Notes under the pieces: generated by a model | The model's database searches: none | What the model was told of the DNA's origin: nothing | What the model saw: only the letters and a program-made list of their open reading frames with translations | Made by a program: the position numbers and the translations under genes | Assembly: GCA_009103225.1 (NCBI GenBank) | Contig: RHPI01000560.1 | Location: 417,465 to 481,464 of the forward strand | DNA: 64,000 nucleotides | Direction: 5' to 3' | Origin: Chlorokybus atmophyticus | Lineage: Eukaryota > Plantae > Mesostigma and Chlorokybus algae | Shown here: positions 31,110-52,399 of the stretch, one piece after another | Layout: the number at the start of each line of letters is the position of its first letter | Position numbering within the stretch: position 1 is the first letter of the stretch

Positions 31110-31781
<672 letters not shown>

Positions 31782-33360
31782 CTGCTGTTGCCGTTACCAC
31801 CCTGCTGCGACAATGGAGACCGAAACTGCGTGTGTTGTGCAGGTATTTGTTCTGACACCAACTACAATGCATGCATGACTGACGGGGATGGGCTGTAGTG
31901 GTAGTCGTATAAGTAGTGTGTTACTGAAGGAGTTGTGAGCCCGCTGGTCAATGATGTATGCCTTGATGTTGGTGGGTGGTTATTGTGATATGTTGAATAC
32001 TATCCTTGCATGTACTTTGGACGCTTTGCAATTTCGTACACATGTCAGTGCATATCCTGTACACACATGCACTCTTTGTACATACATGCGCTTGCACGCA
32101 TGTGTTTACAAAGAATGCATTTTCACAGCTCTTCACCATCAAGAGGCATCAGTGGCCACCGGTCGCGAGGAGACTGCCTGGGGAGCAAGCTGCCTGGTAA
32201 AGCGGCCCGTGTGTGAAGGACAGCAGCAGACACATGCAAGCTTGGCTGTGTTGTGTGCTTGCTGCCTTGACCAATTGGGCCCAATCCATCGGTGTACTAT
32301 GCACTGCCAGCAAGCAAGCCTCGGGGCTGCCCAGCCCCTACCCTACCCTACCCTACCCTTGGAGACTGCATACGTGCCATGATGGTGCTCGCCGCGGCCA
32401 TAGCAGAGCAGAGAGAGAGAGAGAGAGAGACTGCATGATTGTCCCCCACACGGCGTTTGGACAAAGAGTAACAGTGCTGCTGCTTGTGCTGCAGGTAAAC
32501 AACTGTGGATGCATGTATGTTTAATAGGGTGAGGGGGTTGTAAGAGTAGAGCAGAGTAGTTTATGCATAGAACCCGGTGGTCGAGCATATATCAGAATGT
32601 GGGTGATGTTGCTGTGAGGTTGGTGTACAGAGTGTGAGAGCTTATGCATGCTGCACGCGTGCCAAGCACTCTGGGCATGCTGCATTGGTCCTTAAGCCTT
32701 CAGTACACTTGCACAACTGCATACGTGCGCGCGCTGCTATGACACACAGTATCTGATCATGTGACGCCCAGCAGATGCCCAGCCTTTCTTTTGATCGCAG
32801 CAGCAGGACAGATCACTGCCAACAGTAGCCTTTCTGGCAATGGTGCATACGCAGTTGATACCAACCACACCAGCTACAGCACACCACAACGACAACAAGT
32901 GTACTTTGGATGAGTGCTGTGGCGGTGTACTGTTGAAGACCACGCGCACTGCATGCTGCCATGAATGTGGCACCAACAGTTAAACCACACTGATGGTAGT
33001 TGCCAACCATAACATGATGGCACATTGCAATACAACAGCACATTAACATCCTGATTGCTAAGCAAACACTCTGGTGCCAAGTTGACCATGAGCCCATGCC
33101 ATTGGCAGTGCGTTTGGCCCCTCAGCAGTGTTATGCCTTACTCAGTCAAGTTGACCAGCACCACGCTTCAGTGTGACTGTTCGTTGCAAACAGTATACAG
33201 TGCACGACTTGCAGGTGCCAACATTTGCTTCATTAATCACTAAATGTGCATAGTGAGAGGTCTGTACAACCTACAACAAGGTCATGTAGCATACAATGTG
33301 TACAATGTTCATGGGATGCGCAATGTGCTCTGCAACGGCTTGCGTGTGTGAACATACATG

Positions 33361-35912: not shown

Positions 35913-36721
35913 TACTAAGTGCTGATTTCATACTATATGATATGTTACACATAGTTACTCCTCTCGGGACAGGCGCAGATATCGGCGGAACATGCGAAAG
36001 GATATCAAATCAGATGGCCGTTCGTATGTTAAACACAGCTGTCAAGTGTTACTGATGAGTAGCTGCTATACAATGATATCAACTGCACATTGGCATTGCT
36101 GTACAAGTTGGTGTTTATGTAATGAAGCATGACCACAACATTGACAGCACAGGGTGTAGCTGCTTAGTAATGCAACTTGTCCTTGGCACTCGCACCCTTA
36201 AAGGCACACACCACCACTCTGCACGATGACTTGACAGATGTGCGGTCAGGGACCCCATACTAGCAAGCACTACGAGGGGAGGCACGGAAACCATACTAGC
36301 CAGGGATTCAGTTATTGCATTGGGGGGCTCCCACAGCAATAACGCTGCATAAAAGAAGGAAAAGGGCGAGGAACATAGCAAGAAAGGAGCGAAGAGGAAA
36401 GGAGAGGAGAGAGGAGAGGGAGGGAGAGAAGGACTCGTAAGAAGAGGGGGAGAAGGGGAGGGAAGCTTTCCCTCAAACGGTTTGAGTGCTGCAATGCGTG
36501 TTGCTACTGTTACCGTGGCCGTGCTGTCGCGAAGACAAATAAGATTATGGTTTAATTGTCAAGGCAATTATAGGCTATGGTTGCCTTGTGCAGATGCTGA
36601 ATGTTATGTAGGCAATTTGCGTACATGTATGTGTAGAGTATACGTATAGTCTACTATACCACGTGATGTAATTCAGTAGAGTAGTTGCAATTCATGCTCA
36701 CGCAGCTGACAGAGCATCCTC

Positions 36722-37062
36722 NNNNNNNNNNNNNNNNNNNNNNNNNNNNNNNNNNNNNNNNNNNNNNNNNNNNNNNNNNNNNNNNNNNNNNNNNNNNNNN
36801 NNNNNNNNNNNNNNNNNNNNNNNNNNNNNNNNNNNNNNNNNNNNNNNNNNNNNNNNNNNNNNNNNNNNNNNNNNNNNNNNNNNNNNNNNNNNNNNNNNNN
36901 NNNNNNNNNNNNNNNNNNNNNNNNNNNNNNNNNNNNNNNNNNNNNNNNNNNNNNNNNNNNNNNNNNNNNNNNNNNNNNNNNNNNNNNNNNNNNNNNNNNN
37001 NNNNNNNNNNNNNNNNNNNNNNNNNNNNNNNNNNNNNNNNNNNNNNNNNNNNNNNNNNNNNN
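36722..37062. other. Assembly gap (341 N) followed by a (TA)n run
   Basis: N run; TA repeat at 37063-37098. Confidence 0.99.
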
Positions 37063-37691
37063 TATATATATATATATATATAAATATATATATATATATG
37101 TCAATTGATTAAAAGGGCAACCCATATCGCGCTGGTCGAGGGTCATTCGAGGAGTAGCTGCAACGAATACGCATGCTGCAAGGAGCCATTCAAGGGGTTC
37201 TACAACAGAAGCCTCCATGCATGCACTAATCATAATGGATGCATGCCACGTCGTGGCGTGACGGGGATGGGCATTTAATTGCATCGGTTAGGTGAGGTAG
37301 TGGGTGACTTCACTGTGTTGCAGCTTGATGGTCGTGGTCAAACGACTATGTGTTGGCCATGTTGTATGTTGTGTGTAGTGAACCGTTCGCTACACACAGC
37401 ATGGGCTATGTGCTGCTCATGCATGGGCGCATTACACTCCGCGCCTTTTCGCACAGACGCGCGCACGCCGCGAGCAAGCAAGGCCACATGGTCTGACAAC
37501 TTGTTAGAGGATGTGGTCACGTGCGTTAATGCAGCCCTGCTGGAGTGACCCGAATAGCGCACACAGGTTATTGGCAGTGCCGGTATTGCGGTAATACCGC
37601 CCTAGTAGTCTGTGTAAGGGCAAACACATTTGCTATGCACCAACAAAACTCCATCATGGTTTGTTGTAATAGTAAAGCGCACAACAAAACA

Positions 37692-40763: not shown

Positions 40764-41416
40764 CCGTTAGGCATGCATACATGCGTATTGTTGGTTAATT
40801 ACCTGTGCAACACACGAGCAGCAGCGTCAACCACGGTAGTCCAGGTGAAGCGTAACAGCAGCAGGCAGCATGCAGCACACTCCCTCTCCCTCCCTCTCTC
40901 CCCCTCTCCCACAGTCTCCCTCCCTCTCTCCCTCTCCGTCTGTCCCTCCCCCTGCTTTCCTACTTCTTCGTCCCCTGCTCCGCCTGTTCTTTCTCCTCTG
41001 CCTCCCCCTCCTCCTGCTGTCATTGTGCCGTCGCCTCGACTGCCAACCCTTGTCGCCGCTGATCTGGCAAGGCCCCTCTGCCCCGCCCCTCTGCCCTGCC
41101 TCTCGTTCTGCAGGCTGGCATGCAGTGCTGCACTGTGGTACTGTGGCACTGCACTGTGTAGCGCTGGCAGTTAGGTGGTGCTGGTGGGGTTGGGTGGTGG
41201 GGTTGGCGGGGGACGAAGTAGGGAAACAGGGGGAGGGACAGATGGAGAGGGAGAGAGGGAGGGAGACTGTGGGAGAGGGGGAGAGAGGGAGGGAGAGGGA
41301 GTGTGCTGCATGCTGCCTGCTGCTGTTACGCTGCACCTGGACTACCATGGTTGACGCTGCTGCTCGTGTGTTGCACAGGTAATTAACCAACAAACGCATG
41401 TATGCATGCCTAACGG
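40764..41416. repeat. Fold-back: about 210-bp inverted arms around a 230-bp spacer
   Basis: 40764-40975 is the near-exact reverse complement of 41209-41416 (few substitutions, one 3-bp indel). Confidence 0.9.
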
Positions 41417-41797
41417 GGAGGTCTAGAGTAGGGTAGTGTGGTAGGTAAACAGGCAGTCAATATAGCCCGGTGGTGGTATATGTGACTGTGTTTGCATGCT
41501 GGTTGGTATGCTATGCTGTTGTGACGTCATGCTTGTCGCCAATTGTCTCGCGCATATCCTGTACACACACCGTGGTTGACGCTGCTGCTCGTGTGTTGCA
41601 CAGGTAATTAACCAACAATACGCATATATGCATGCCTAACGGGGAGGTCTAGAGTAGGGTAGTGTGGTAGGTAAACAGGCAGTCAACATAGCCCGGTGGT
41701 GGTGTATGTGACTGTGTTTGCATGCTGGTTGGTATGCTATGCTGTTGTGACGTCATGCATGTCGCCAATTGTCTCGCGCATATCCTATACACACACG
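41347..41797 (+). repeat. 225-bp tandem duplication overlapping the right fold-back arm
   Basis: ggttgacgctgctgctc at 41349 and 41574; both units nearly identical through gcgcatatcct. Confidence 0.9.
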
Positions 41798-42770
41798 CCC
41801 ATGTGGGCAGGTGATTACCAACTGCATATTGACTGCTGCATGTCTAACGGGGTAGAGGCAGTAGCATGCTAGTAGTAGCCCGGTGGTCAACTAATTGTCA
41901 TTTGTACGACACCTTGCATGTATTGCTGCGTGCTGACTGAACTACACGTTGTGCATGCGCATGCATGTCCTGCATTTGATGTACACACACTTGCTACTGC
42001 TGGTGACGCAGGTACTGCACTGAGTTGGTGCGACGGTTGCTGCCTTGGGGCTATGCATACGGTGGAGAAGTTTAGCTGATAGATCAACTACTGGCGGTGG
42101 TGACTGCAATATGATGACGGCTGTGGTTGACTGCTGCTGTGTATGGGCATGTGCACGTCGATGAACTGAGTGCGCATTCAAACACCTTTTGAGTATGATA
42201 CAGCACCCAGTACACACAGACACACACATATAAACAAGTACACAACAAACATGAACGGCCTGCACAGTTGACTGTATAGCACATGAGATTAAGCAGCAAT
42301 GCGAATGCAATGCTACGAGCAGCAGCATGTACAGACTGGACGTGCACAAGTAGATATGATGCATGAAGTTACACAACGCCAGCTCAGACCACGCCCTGCC
42401 TTCTGCAACAACTGACCTGACGCAGCGCATCACACCGTTACATCTAGAAAGCAACAGCTACATGCACCGTCATATACTAGACACTACCATTGCGACATCT
42501 GTAGTGCAGTACAGGTAAGCAATGTACCAAAGAGTGCAGCTAATATGGAAGTCTGCGTGGCAACTCAAGCGTTGTCATGCCCAATCAGGCTGCCCTGGCA
42601 GATAAACGCATCCCGCACACCACAGCGGCTTCAAGTAGACCTGTTTGAGCACAGATTTCGCAAAGCCATTGCGGGTACCCGCGACGTGTGTGCAAGCAGC
42701 CGGCACGCGCAGCCATTGACCACCTGGCGCCTGCGCCTGCTTATGCGTAATGCACCTGTATTCTAAGGTG

Positions 42771-45700
42771 TCATGACCTTTTCACAGGTGCAAGAAGAAC
42801 TGGACGAGCTGCAGCACTGTCGCCGTTCTCGTGCGACGTGGCTGTGGACTCAAACCATGCTGCATTGCTGCCTCGTTTCACGGGCTCAATCACCTGTTGT
42901 GCACACATGATCAACAACATTGTCATCAGAGACACTCCATGACCCAAAACTGCCACCAATGCGACCAGGAGGTAGCAAGATGGTGTTCGCTGTGAAGTAT
43001 GGACACAACAATTGAGCAATGCACACATGGATGTGATACCTGTACAGCACCGTTGCTGAGGCCAATTGCAAACTGCGATGGTATATACGGATGCGCAGCG
43101 ATAGAGAGGGGTGATATAGACGGTGAGCTGGGGGAAAGGACGTCGGGAGACAACTTGCAGCAAGGCTTCAGAGAAGCTGTGTCGAATATGCCAACAGAGC
43201 CATCTCTGAAAGCCACATAGGTGAGCATGCTGTCACAGGAAAAGACGGCACTGACAATTGGTGCATGGAGTGACAACGCTCGAGGTGACCAACTCCGCAG
43301 CAACTCCATCTTCGGGGGATCATATATTGCAAGCTGCAAAGGCGCACACATCACACATCATGCTTTGAATACCGACTGCGGCAACGAGACTGCAGGGCTC
43401 AAAAACCACTGGAACAACTCAGCCAAGCCGTCCGTACTGCCTTGCATTTCCTGCTGTCCCTAGACATCAGAACAACAACTCACCATTGACTCATGAACCA
43501 CGAGTAATTGGTGCTGATCAGAGTGAAACTGCACGCGCGCCTCTCCTGTCAATGGCTGACCATTTGAGGCAGTGAGCTGCTTGGTTTCAATCAGGTCCCA
43601 CGCATCCGTGCCCCAGATGCAAACTGAGGCATCAGCTGCTGATGACACCAAAACTTGCAGCGTGGTCGAAAACGCCAACCCCGTGATGTACTTCTTGTGG
43701 TTGCGTAGCTTGCTCTTGACTTCATCAAGCCGGACATTGTAGATTTGTACAGTAGAGTCCTCCATGCCAATGGCAATGATGTTGTTGTCTTGCGGGTGGA
43801 AGGCCAGGAATGTCGCAGCAGGCGGAGGCGGCACAAATGTTGTCATGACCTGCGAACATAGCATGTATATGCTAATGGCTAAGCACGATATTCGATGCCC
43901 AGAACGTACCTTGAAGGTGATAAGGTTGAACAGCGTAACCTTGCCGCCAAAGGCGGACAGAACGTACGAGTCGTTTTTGGAAAGCGCTACACAAGGGACA
44001 GCCATGCCTGGTTTACCATCAGCGCGTATATCATTCACCATCTGAGCTCCACTAGGAGGGGTATAGAGCGCTGGTGCAGCAGCAGCTGTTGCCTGCATAG
44101 TTGGAAAACATGTCAGTCTTAACGTGAGACTCTCAAACAACATGTGTTTACGTTTACATCTCATCGCAAAACCACAACTGACCTGATTGTCGGGGTTGCG
44201 TTCACCTTGTTGCCACCGCCATAACTTGTTTATAGCATGGGTGCCAAGAGCCATCAGTGCGTTGCCAGAGTTTGTGTACATCAACAGCAGAACTTGGGGT
44301 CCACTCTTCTGCAACCAAACGCTGTGTAAGAACCTGCACTGCCAACACAATGCACGCAACAACATACCTCATTCTGGGATAATGAATCTGGCAGTCGCAA
44401 GGATAAGCAATCACTCTCATCAACGAGTTCACCAGGGGACTCCGGTGCGGATGCAATAGCCAGGGGCCTCTCCTCATCCACAGGGCGCTCCTCCTCACCA
44501 TCAACCCTATCTCTGACAGCTTCCCTCTCCCTCTCCCTTTCCCTCTCCCTCTCCCGCTCTCTTTCCCTCTCCCTCTCCCTTTCCCTGTCTCGATCCTTCT
44601 CCCTTTCCCTCTCTCGCTCTCTGTCCCTGTCACGATCCCGGTCTCGGTCACTGTCGCGCTCTCGATCGCTATCGCGGTCCCTCTCGCGGTCTCGGTCTCT
44701 ATCCCTCTCGCGGTCTCGGTCCCTGTCACGGTCTCTGTCTCGGTGCCTTTCCTTTTCCCTCTCCCAATCCTTCTCCCTGTCCTTTTCTCTGTCTCTTTCC
44801 CTGTCGCGCTCGCGTTCGCGGTCTCTATCCCGATCACGTTCACGGGGCCTTTCTCTATCCCCATCACGCTCACGCTCGCGGTCTCGTTCTTTATCCGGAA
44901 GTGGCTGCAGTTGCCACAGTTACTGACTGCATACACCATGCATTGAGGTAGCCAACCCCTGTTTTCACACATCAAAGCCATGTGTAACCTGTTGAGGTGG
45001 AGAGTCCTCAGCGGGAGCTTTGCCTGCGCTTGATGTGGCCACTGCAGGTGGCTTTGCTGCTGGAATAGAATTCTTAACCGCTGCTAAACCAGCAATCGCC
45101 ATTGCCTCAGCCTGCACAGTTCCAATACTCCATGCATCAGAATGTACGTCTGTATACGCGCCACAAGTCCTCAGGTCTACTCGATACCAACCTGCTGCTG
45201 CTTCTCAGCATCTGCTGCTGCTGCGCCTTCCGCAAGCAGGCGCATACCCTCCAGATTCACAAGGACTTTTATGCTGCGGTCAGCAGCAGTCACAGCAAGG
45301 AGGGAACCTGGCTTATTGAATTTCACAATGGGGCTTGCCTGCAAGCACACCTGCAGATCAGTGCTGATCCCGGGAGAGATTAGCAGTGCACCCTGCAAGG
45401 GTAAAAGTAAACTACATACCGGAAGATCACCATCAGCGTCCAAAGCCATCAACATTGCTGTTGAGTCCATATCCCAGAACTTGACACGATGCCCATCGCC
45501 AGCAACAATGAACTTGTTCTTTATTGTGTCAAAACGGGCAATCACTTCTTGTCGGTTCCTGCGCATTGCAATGAATAAGCTAGTCAATCCAATATTGCAT
45601 GCATGCATTTTGTGACAGTGTGGCAATGCTCGACTTGTATGAGCAGAAATGGCTTTCTACTGGAAACATGTATGTGGCACTTACGCAAATCCTTGATAAC

Positions 45701-48700: not shown

Positions 48701-49314
48701 ATTGCGAAGGCAACTCTGAAAGCTCGAATGTGCGTGGTCGTTACGGAGCTAAGTTGCAACACACCACATCGGGTGCAGTAGTACTCAACCACCGCAACTG
48801 CTTCGCACACTGCAAGCTCTGCTGATGTGGTGAACTGAGTATACCATAGCAACTTCCATGCTGTATACCTGTCAAGGGCTTCGAGATACTTCTGCTTGCG
48901 GAGCTCAAAAAACATCTTCATAGAGTACCGATTATCGTCCACCTTGGTGAAACCGCTAAGGTACCTCTCCACTTCGTCCCATCTGCCCTCATGCACCTGC
49001 TCCTCGAAATACCTAAGGTTGAAGTAGAAACCGGCTTCCATTTCCAACCTGCCATACAACAAACGGCACACGTCGGCGAAGTACTAGACAGAAGCCTAGC
49101 ATGCAGCCCCGTGCAATGCTGCCGCAGCTCGACGGTTTACATATGCCGGCCCATGAAACCAAAAGCTAAGCTACAAATGTAAGCAGTACCACAGCAAGCC
49201 ACCAGCACAGTATTTGCTGAGTACCAGTACTTACTTGTGCACGGTTTCCTTGAACTTCTCCTCATCGAGAAACTGCAGGATGAGGAAAACCAGCTCACGA
49301 CTGAGGGAAGACAT
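42771..49314 (-). CDS. TPL: TOPLESS/TPR co-repressor (LisH-CTLH-CRA + two WD40 propellers), multi-exon, with an RD/RE insertion
   Basis: MSSLSRELVFLILQFLDEEKFKETVHK|, YLSGFTKVDDNRYSMKMFFELRKQKYLEALD, LIEANPQFRDKLTFPTLKASRLRTLINQ|SLNWQHQLCK, IDAHEGGVNDLAF, FSTARDGKIKAWLYDNLGSRVDYDAPGKWCTTMAYS, VPCVALSKNDSYVLSA, ATFLAFHPQDNNIIAIGMED; stop 42771. Confidence 0.96.
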
Positions 49315-49693
49315 GGCAGAGGTCGACGCTGCTGCCGCAGCGGCAGCAGCCGCTGCGGCAGCACCTCCTAACCCAGGATCCACGGCCCCCTAGACCCCAG
49401 CGCCGCCGCCTAGAGTAGGCGTTCAGCAGCAACTCACTGCCCCATACCCACCGCCCAGGTGAGAGACAGACAACCCGCTTTCACACACCTCGCACACAAC
49501 CACCCCGGGCAAGAACACAACGGCAAGGTACTAGCCTACTGCCCTTTTCCTCCAACTGCCAGCGCCCACATCCTGGACACCGCCTGCACCAAGCACCTCC
49601 TCGCCGTCCCCGCCGCCGCCGCCGCCGCCGCAGAAGGCATGCCGGCAATGATGACATCTGTTGAGCCCGTGGCAGGCACAGGCCAACGGCACT

Positions 49694-49701: not shown

Positions 49702-51819
49702 AGCGTCCCATCCAGTAGGGACTTCGCGGTTTTTGTTCTCTTTGAAGCTTTTCTTTGTCGTATACGGTTCGGTTGCATTTTCTAAATCGCCGCGATCAGC
49801 GGAGCAACTTGCTCCGAGCTTGCGCCGACGACGTTCAACGAACCCGACAAACGTGACATCACACTGCCAACGCCAGGAGGGAAGAGCTACGCGCCGCAGA
49901 CAGACAGGGCGCCGAAACTTCCAACCTGCGCCGTTTCGACCTAGGAACCGCTCTCACGCCGCAGCGCAGTCAGCACCGGTCTAATCAGCGCTCTAAACCG
50001 ATGGGTATCCGCCAATACCCAGTGCCAGGCAACCGGCCCTGACTCAGCCAGTGACCGCCAGCTCTGCCATCTGCTACGGTTAAAGCGGCCGCAGCTACTA
50101 CTGCTTGCCGGAACTTATTGCGGCGCAACTTTCAAGCTGTTGCTTCTATCAGAGTTGAAAGTTATGCATGTTTGCTGGATGCACTAACACCCTCAAAGGC
50201 TCCAATGATTGTGTTGACGACAACATGAATCACGTACGGCTTCCCGTCCTCCGGAGCTACCCGGCTCTAGCTACAGCCTATAGCGCATAGGCTATAGGTA
50301 TCTGACGCCTGTGGCTATGGCCGACACACAATTTAGTACGATCCCATTGCCTGTACAGTACTGCAGCCGCGTTGATCCGATCTTTGATCCGATCATTAGG
50401 TTTCTGAGGTTTCATGTCGCAGCTCAGATATGCACGATGATTGCTCATATTCGTCAACAAAATAGCGCGCAGCCTGTACGGCGGGGAGTGGTGGACTACA
50501 CTGACGGTATGAACATTGTCACGTACGCTTGTATTTTCACTGACATCTGACGTAGGCTACGTCACGTAGCCAACCAGCGGGGCCTACTGCAACCTGCTAC
50601 TGATGCGGCGTCATCCCAAATGACGCCGCCGGCGGAATGACTCATTTAGGCGTGACTACAATCAGTGATAGCGGTGCAACCTTGCGAGACTTATCGACAG
50701 GTGCATGCCCTCGGGTACAAAACGGTTGAAGGCGATCCTGGCGAAGCATTTTACGCAAGTTTAGCTCGAATTGAAGTTATCACGGAGTGCTTCTATACAT
50801 GCGTAGTGTTATAATAGTTCGCAAAGCTGCGTGAAGCACGCTCCGAAAATACATAAAGGTGTGCTCACGCATGGCACCAGCATGGGCACACATACAAAGA
50901 AAGCAATAGCTTGATCTGGGGCCAAGGTAAAGCTTTTACACACCTGTGGGTTGGACACAACCATAAGTGTAGACCGTCAAGCAGCAATCGTGGTGTGGGA
51001 AGCAAGCAGAAGCACAGCAAGGGAAGGGGTGGCAACCTGTCAGCGCAGAGAGAGAGGAAGGACAGGTGAGACCCGGTCTTCAACAACAGTGGCAAGACGA
51101 ATAGACGGACAGACGGACGGACGGCCGGACAGACGGACGGCCACTTGAACCAACAGCCTGGCCCCCGCTTAGCTCTAGTGCACACGGTTGGTTATGCCGC
51201 CGCCATTTCCACTCTCAAATCCAAGATGTACACCTGAATTAGGTACCACTGTTAGACACCGCACACAGGCCATATGCAATGTGAATGCCATCCGAAAATT
51301 ATTTTCATAGTGGCTGTTAACGAAATGAGCCAGCCTGTGTCAAGTAGCATGGTAGCCGACCTCAAGCAGACGTATATCAGCATGCATACCAGCATAACCA
51401 CCGCATATATGATAACCAGCATTTATATCACAATCAGTCAAGTACGGTTAGACTTATGTCAATCTACTAAATTACAGCGGAGTAATGTGAGGTAGAGTTG
51501 ATGTTCATGACATGTAGTATACCATTGATTGAATGTGATGCTTACACAACTATGTGTTGTACCTATATGTTATGTGATAGTACGTTATATCCATAATATA
51601 TTGATGTTTGCTAGCATGTGTCTTACAATTTCCTTCCTTCACTTATTATCTAAAGTATTAGTAACAACTTGATGTAAAGTATAATATACGTTAAATTTAC
51701 ACATGTATCATGTGCAAATGTACATGATATACTTATATGTATGCATAATACAAGTGTTATGTATGTCACATGACATACATATGTTTACAAAAGTTACGTG
51801 GTGTACAACATATAGACAT

Positions 51820-51942
51820 GTATATACGTACATACAAACATGAATTATTATGTATATATGCACACACACACATATATACATACATAGCTAGATAGATATG
51901 TATATATATACATATAACCATATTGCATTATGTATAACACAC

Positions 51943-51974
<32 letters not shown>

Positions 51975-52035
51975 GTGCATACAATTATATACGTGCATAT
52001 AAGTATTATGTATAACACATATACACACACACATG

Positions 52036-52071
<36 letters not shown>

Positions 52072-52240
52072 CACATATTCATATATATGTACATGTATAT
52101 ATGTATATGTGTATGCGTATTCATACATATGTGTATATGTGCATATATATATACACACGTATATATACGAATATATATGTAATATATGCGTGCGCGCGTG
52201 TGTATATATATATATATATATATATGTTTATATATATATG
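51820..52240. repeat. Compound (TA)n/(CA)n/(TG)n microsatellite
   Basis: Interrupted dinucleotide runs throughout. Confidence 0.9.
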
Positions 52241-52399
52241 TTTAAAAGCGTACTGTGACATGAAGTAGGTAGCATGATAAGGTGATTCCAAAAACTCGAC
52301 TCCCTACACATGGACTTGTGCTTGCACTTCGGCCCCAGCCGCTTTGCCTAGCTTAGCCTGTAGTTAGCTAATGCAACTTAGGTGGCTTGCTTGTATTTG

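Follow-up and report, generated by a model that had tools for sequence, protein, structure and literature searches.

A TOPLESS gene of Chlorokybus atmophyticus was found to carry, in the linker between its two WD40 propellers, a 124-residue tract of alternating arginine and aspartate or glutamate. Judged from sequence, the tract appears to be a lineage-specific, constrained coding repeat within a known protein, the relatives compared being angiosperm, Sphagnum and environmental sequences, none of them a known streptophyte alga. The gene lies on the minus strand at about 49314–42930 of the window, that is, the whole 64,000-nt stretch analysed (contig RHPI01000560.1 of GenBank assembly GCA_009103225.1), and is a clear TOPLESS/TPR co-repressor. 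New here are the degenerate, in-frame nature of the repeat, its synonymous-type variation, the lack of a plausible splice route by which it could be skipped, and its absence from about 115 relatives. The explanation preferred as a whole, though held with somewhat less than even confidence, is that a constrained in-frame expansion of hexamers would act as a cohesive mixed-charge module in the co-repressor.

The assignment of the gene, already proposed in a preliminary description of this DNA, is borne out by Pfam matches to LisH_TPL and TPR1-like_2nd and by tblastn of a canonical TPL across the whole locus. PF17814 (LisH_TPL) scored 40.8 bits (cut-off 30.7), and PF21889 (TPR1-like_2nd), which represents the CTLH/CRA second domain, scored 91.5 bits (cut-off 27). 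The canonical angiosperm protein P0024 (1134 aa) was collinear with the locus, beginning at the start codon and taking in both propellers; the match to propeller 1 is given in Table 1, that to propeller 2 joined residues 778–1101 to 44296–43028, and WD40 Pfam matches were obtained. Ahead of propeller 2, CLSLRLPD...YTNSG in Chlorokybus corresponds to CRSLRLPD...YTNSG in P0024. The searches were made with single exons or stop-free stretches rather than with a joined full-length gene model. The N-terminus of charophyte TPL has been reported to be extremely conserved (PMC6797205). The same paper lists TPL sequences for Chlorokybus (OneKP transcript AZZW-2021890), Mesostigma (GBSK01064957.1), Klebsormidium nitens (kfl00881_0020), Entransia, Nitella, Coleochaete, Mougeotia and Spirogyra. 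A GCN-rich run at 49315–49383, directly upstream of the start codon, would encode about 12 in-frame alanines; as relatives begin with MSSLSREL, it probably belongs to the 5' UTR.

Table 1 Features of the TOPLESS gene of C. atmophyticus, with positions in the window and the evidence on which each was placed.
Feature	Position	Strand	Basis
First coding exon (start Met, LisH)	49234..49314	-	Pfam LisH_TPL, E=1.7e-10; residues 1–27 of TPL P0024 96% identical
CTLH-containing exon, TOPLESS N-terminal domain	48868..49041	-	Pfam TPR1-like_2nd, E=6.3e-26
End of last exon of WD40 propeller 1 (...IKVLVN...QQQ)	45192..45293	-	tblastn, P0024 residues 417–678 to 46490–45234; exon end from sequence
Ala/Pro-rich linker exon, 41 codons, phase 0 at both ends	44989..45111	-	sequence; flanking introns 45191–45112 (80 nt) and 44988–44905 (84 nt)
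Tract-bearing linker exon, 179 codons	44368..44904	-	sequence translation, splice sites
Alternating Arg-Asp/Arg-Glu tract, 124 aa	44521..44892	-	composition, alternation, TRF repeats, codon-position variation, AlphaFold2
Conserved CLSLRLPD motif, entry to propeller 2	44386..44409	-	CRSLRLPD at residues about 766–773 of angiosperm P0024
First exon of WD40 propeller 2 (KSGPQVLLLMYTNSG...)	44183..44308	-	about 50% identity to environmental TPL transcripts
Conserved propeller-2 exon, search query	43478..43843	-	WD40 Pfam matches; 53–67% identity to TPL/TPR proteins

The tract-bearing exon, read on the minus strand from 44904 to 44368, has no stop codon, and its translation is identical with the peptide quoted in the preliminary description. 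It is bordered by a ctgcag acceptor at 44905–44910 and a gtatgt donor at 44367. The upstream intron contains an in-frame stop and must therefore be spliced out, and the introns on either side of the Ala/Pro-rich exon each have an AG/GT donor and a GCAG acceptor. The downstream intron (44367–44309) is 59 nt long and the next exon, beginning KSGPQVLLLMYTNSG, opens at 44308 with a complete codon; together with the upstream intron this confirmed that the exon is in phase 0 on both sides, as had been claimed. Equally correct were the placement of the tract between the propellers, in the linker before CxSLRLPD, and the remark that the list of open reading frames shows this stretch in the wrong frame, since it is listed there only as the other-frame ORF 44202..44981.

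The tract corresponds to residues 5–128 of the exon and is composed of 53 R, 31 E, 29 D, 5 K and 6 other residues, with all six arginine codons in use, which agrees with the mixed usage described earlier. Charged residues account for 118 of the 124 positions (fraction 0.95), the sign alternates in 111 of 123 neighbour steps, like charges are never adjacent (maximum same-sign run 1), and the net charge per residue is −0.016. Thirty-seven residues separate the end of the tract from the conserved CxSLRLPD motif, and downstream of the tract the sequence VD..RPVDEE... still resembles the land-plant linker. The feature is real and the gene call right: this is a TOPLESS variant whose low-complexity module is of a known kind, and not a new system.

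At the DNA level Tandem Repeats Finder (TRF) disclosed overlapping degenerate arrays with periods of 6, 12, 18, 24, 30 and 42 and 72–82% matches, indels amounting to 0% in seven of eight rows and to 5% in the period-12 array at 44756–44805, so that the head-to-tail units of a coding micro- or minisatellite are visible. The 5' two thirds of the tract are built of CGN-GAY units and in the 3' third (AGGGAR)n predominates, AGG providing 12 of its 20 arginine codons. This structure points to in-frame hexamer slippage, followed by divergence of the units, as the most likely origin of the tract. The earlier statement that it is unlike a slipped microsatellite thus holds for its present, diverged state and fails for its origin. 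Derivation from the (GA)n-type repeat at 31.1–31.8 kb was considered and rejected for the tract as a whole, as it is feasible only for the 3' third (AGR-GAR) and not for the CGN-GAY part.

Several other low-complexity sequences occur in the window. The (GA)n microsatellite itself is pure, spans about 700 nt (31110–31835; 98% purine, one N) and gives RERE/ERER whichever of the three plus-strand frames is read, and a pyrimidine tract of about 450 nt (96% pyrimidine) lies on the plus strand at 36662–37117. GA/CT-rich blocks with a recurring ...VVDAAARVLHR end are found at 40800–41900, just downstream of the TOPLESS gene; the plus-strand ORF 40870..41382 and the minus-strand ORF 41171..41311 are nearly identical and share the beginning MQHTPSPSLSPP, and the region resembles a repeat element duplicated in inverted or tandem arrangement. 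An AT-rich block at 51600–52300 (GC about 0.39–0.45) contains many TA/CA-type microsatellites with YIYI/HTHT ORFs on both strands.

The variation among the repeat units is distributed by codon position. The tract comprises 62 hexamers, 29 of them distinct, and the non-modal bases per hexamer column (n = 62) number 27, 33 and 41 at the synonymous-type columns, namely the first position of the Arg codon (A or C, largely synonymous; 27) and the two third codon positions (33 and 41), versus 5, 2 and 1 elsewhere. The totals, 101 against 8, would arise by chance with a probability of about 1e-21 under equal spread over the columns, by our own arithmetic. Acidic codons of the tract have an entropy of 0 bits at positions 1 and 2 and of 1.96 bits at position 3, and only 33% of the single-base changes possible in the tract keep the charge class. 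A non-coding GA-rich block nearby (41156–41306) is without such codon-position periodicity. Because the units diverged at synonymous-type sites while the charge alternation stayed, the tract is judged, on codon usage, to be translated and under protein-level constraint.

Between the terminal xKxLxN motif of propeller 1 and LRLP, the Chlorokybus linker spans 230 aa, or 106 aa without the tract, versus 92–99 aa in 80 angiosperm proteins and 91–125 aa in six environmental transcripts, and its charged fraction is 0.64 versus 0.23–0.27 in relatives. Given this excess in length, and as the relatives have no such run, the tract is best read as a net insertion. An RD/RE-type tract was absent from about 115 full-length TOPLESS sequences (80 angiosperm TPR4-like proteins and about 35 environmental transcripts). 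The longest alternating run among 120 angiosperm TPR4-like proteins was 4 aa, in line with the earlier claim that land-plant TPL/TPR linkers are without the tract, and no alternating run was present in 120 propeller-2-matching proteins of 166–528 aa, which included a Sphagnum protein with the linker.

A metagenome scan, the source of the environmental sequences, identified 80 loci; full-length, mRNA-like contigs make up about 35 of these, and their ORFs measure 1012–1165 aa. No such run lay within these ORFs, and the encoded proteins were moss-like where recognisable, none being close to Chlorokybus. Runs of RD/RE of 13–15 aa were present on the same strand as the TPL-like WD40 match in contigs L073 (at about 13450), L074 and L076 (both at about 13980). 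As candidate TPL-linker tracts they were rejected, being 5–6 kb downstream of the match, and they probably belong to another gene. Short GA repeats (RERERE) were observed at the 5' ends of the environmental TPL mRNA contigs L015 and L017, in the 5' UTR and outside the ORF.

As for the database searches, a word search with P0024 returned angiosperm TPR4-like proteins only and served as the land-plant control. The best 150 HMMER matches to the conserved propeller-2 exon were dominated by bacterial multi-WD40 proteins; the 24 TPL-like representatives proved to be angiosperm (mis)annotations and not algal. A 302-aa stop-free propeller-2 stretch found a best identity of 67% in the protein collection, with nothing from Chlorokybus, and the 56 unique post-tract residues matched no Chlorokybus transcript or protein fragment there. 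The tract exon had no match in ESM Atlas or Pfam.

A possible role for the tract is suggested by work on arginine-rich mixed-charge domains (R-MCDs). In human cells RD20 is diffuse and RD30–RD60 are increasingly speckle-bound, in a length-dependent manner (Greig et al., bioRxiv 10.1101/771592); RD30–RD60 condense at 5 µM, arginine is indispensable, and RE repeats tend to self-associate (bioRxiv 10.1101/771592). With 124 aa and about 58 basic/acidic pairs the tract exceeds the speckle threshold of at least 30 dipeptides obtained in that work (bioRxiv 10.1101/771592); its basic residues are nearly all arginine (53 R versus 5 K) and it is close to neutral. The PDB proteins matched by the tract in phmmer were Protein Red, NELF-E, SKIP, CPSF6, SNRNP27, DHX8 and ZC3H13, all of them spliceosome or Pol II factors, which is consistent with the earlier claim that RD/RE tracts occur in splicing factors; the likeness is one of composition and not of homology.

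Condensation of TOPLESS has been tied to function in rice, where the functional condensates of TPR2 depend on IDR1 and tetramerisation and deletion of the inter-propeller IDR2 has little effect (PMC13434662), so that the inter-propeller linker is not a known control point. The tract region of Chlorokybus corresponds to this IDR2. The exon of the disordered inter-propeller linker carries hexanucleotide units (CGN/AGR)(GAN) expanded in frame, which encode about 60 Arg-Asp/Arg-Glu dipeptides. It is proposed that the product would act as an arginine-rich mixed-charge domain, a multivalent and electrostatically cohesive module through which the already tetrameric co-repressor might self-associate more, or might enter nuclear bodies rich in RS/RD proteins, of the kind of speckle-like compartments for RNA processing, while the EAR-binding N-terminal domain and both propellers would remain intact. 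Targeting to speckles or condensates is extrapolated from the human-cell work (bioRxiv 10.1101/771592), and the plant or algal rule may differ. The more specific proposal that an early-diverging streptophyte fused a speckle-type R-MCD into TOPLESS, coupling EAR-dependent repression to RS/RD-rich condensates in a natural gain-of-cohesion variant, is considered unlikely; if true, it would show the inter-propeller linker to be able to tune co-repressor condensation. Against a cohesive module, perfectly mixed polyampholytes can behave, according to polymer physics, as inert expanded chains, and the charge pattern could be constrained simply because harmful variants of an otherwise tolerated insert are selected against.

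In the main rival explanation, charged hexamers expanded by slippage in a disordered linker largely insensitive to length; the tract would be translated and add no activity, selection only purging variants with a broken frame or an unbalanced charge. Such a tolerated low-complexity expansion is regarded as somewhat unlikely, because alternation and near-zero charge were kept over 124 residues despite near-saturated third positions, which exceeds the needs of a spacer, and because the tract is far longer than the experimental mixed-charge threshold (bioRxiv 10.1101/771592). It nevertheless agrees with the degenerate tandem repeat found by TRF, with the occurrence in the same window of the pure (GA)n array of ~700 nt reading RERE, which suggests that such repeats are frequent in the genome, with the dispensability of IDR2 of rice TPR2 for condensation (PMC13434662), and with the linker being the least conserved part of TPL, variable in length among relatives. 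Were this explanation true, the tract would be an ordinary low-complexity insert.

A further alternative is that the tract forms a rigid, charged single alpha-helix of about 130 residues and roughly 20 nm, a ruler keeping the propellers apart. The AlphaFold2 single-sequence model indeed predicted one helix over residues 6–137, with pLDDT of 86–98 in 10-residue blocks over 21–130, but the model had no alignment and AlphaFold2 helix predictions are unreliable for charged repeats, in which helices are over-predicted. Since the tract alternates, residues i and i+4 have the same sign, unlike the i/i+4 opposite-charge blocks of ER/K single helices, and Asp, which forms helices poorly, makes up half of its acidic residues. 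Pure RD50, moreover, forms fibrils and gels and not soluble helices (bioRxiv 10.1101/771592). The ruler is accordingly rated as decidedly improbable.

The splice signals were analysed with regard to the presence of the tract in the mRNA. The five introns around the tract exon measure 59–90 nt, all with AG/GT donors and GCAG acceptors. The 30 in-frame AGs within the exon are preceded by G in 25 cases (GAG), by A in four (AAG) and by C in one (CAG), this last being downstream of LRLPD; a sequence scan of the exon thus found no in-frame YAG acceptor ahead of the conserved motif, and all internal in-frame GT..YAG pairs removing at least 200 nt end inside the LRLPD codons. Furthermore, as linker-like sequence follows the tract, an acceptor must be upstream of VD..RPVDEE..., and no plausible splice, as predicted from these signals, drops the tract yet keeps the motif. 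That the tract is intronic or alternatively spliced out of the main mRNA, the exon being an artefact of open GA-rich frames, is therefore very improbable, the codon-position variation being a signature of translation, even though the tract can be read without a stop in two of the three frames, which makes openness weak evidence, the protein-collection searches gave no transcript match for the Chlorokybus gene, and the tract (372 nt) exceeds the neighbouring introns in length.

TOPLESS is the central co-repressor in plant hormone and developmental signalling. A natural orthologue with an RD/RE module of roughly 60 dipeptides in an otherwise dispensable linker offers a ready-made test of added cohesion, and raises the question whether a defined cohesive module alters the nuclear location and the repression strength of a co-repressor. 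The tract also illustrates cleanly how the DNA of a coding repeat can drift while the charge pattern holds.

Compared with land-plant TOPLESS/TPR proteins (Arabidopsis TPL, rice TPR2), the Chlorokybus protein has the same LisH, CTLH-CRA, Pro-rich linker, WD40 propeller 1, disordered linker, CxSLRLPD and WD40 propeller 2, and its linker minus the tract is of similar length; the Arg-Asp/Glu tract in its inter-propeller linker has no counterpart in the roughly 115 full-length relatives compared. With the ER/K single alpha-helix (SAH) spacers the tract shares a high content of charged residues, a near-zero net charge and a predicted helix, but it alternates strictly at i/i+1, is without i/i+4 salt-bridge blocks and is Asp-rich, and is not a member by sequence. 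The RD motif of NELF-E (E=9e-7, query residues 48–126) is likewise an RD repeat in a negative regulator of transcription; NELF-E pairs it with an RRM and has paused Pol II as its target, whereas TOPLESS works through EAR-motif repressors and histone deacetylation. With the R-MCDs of U1-70K, NELF-E, CPSF6 and fungal SPA-5 the tract has in common the RD/RE dipeptides, the arginine base, the near-zero charge and a length above the threshold (bioRxiv 10.1101/771592); its host, by contrast, is a transcriptional co-repressor of the Groucho type that has no RNA-binding domain.
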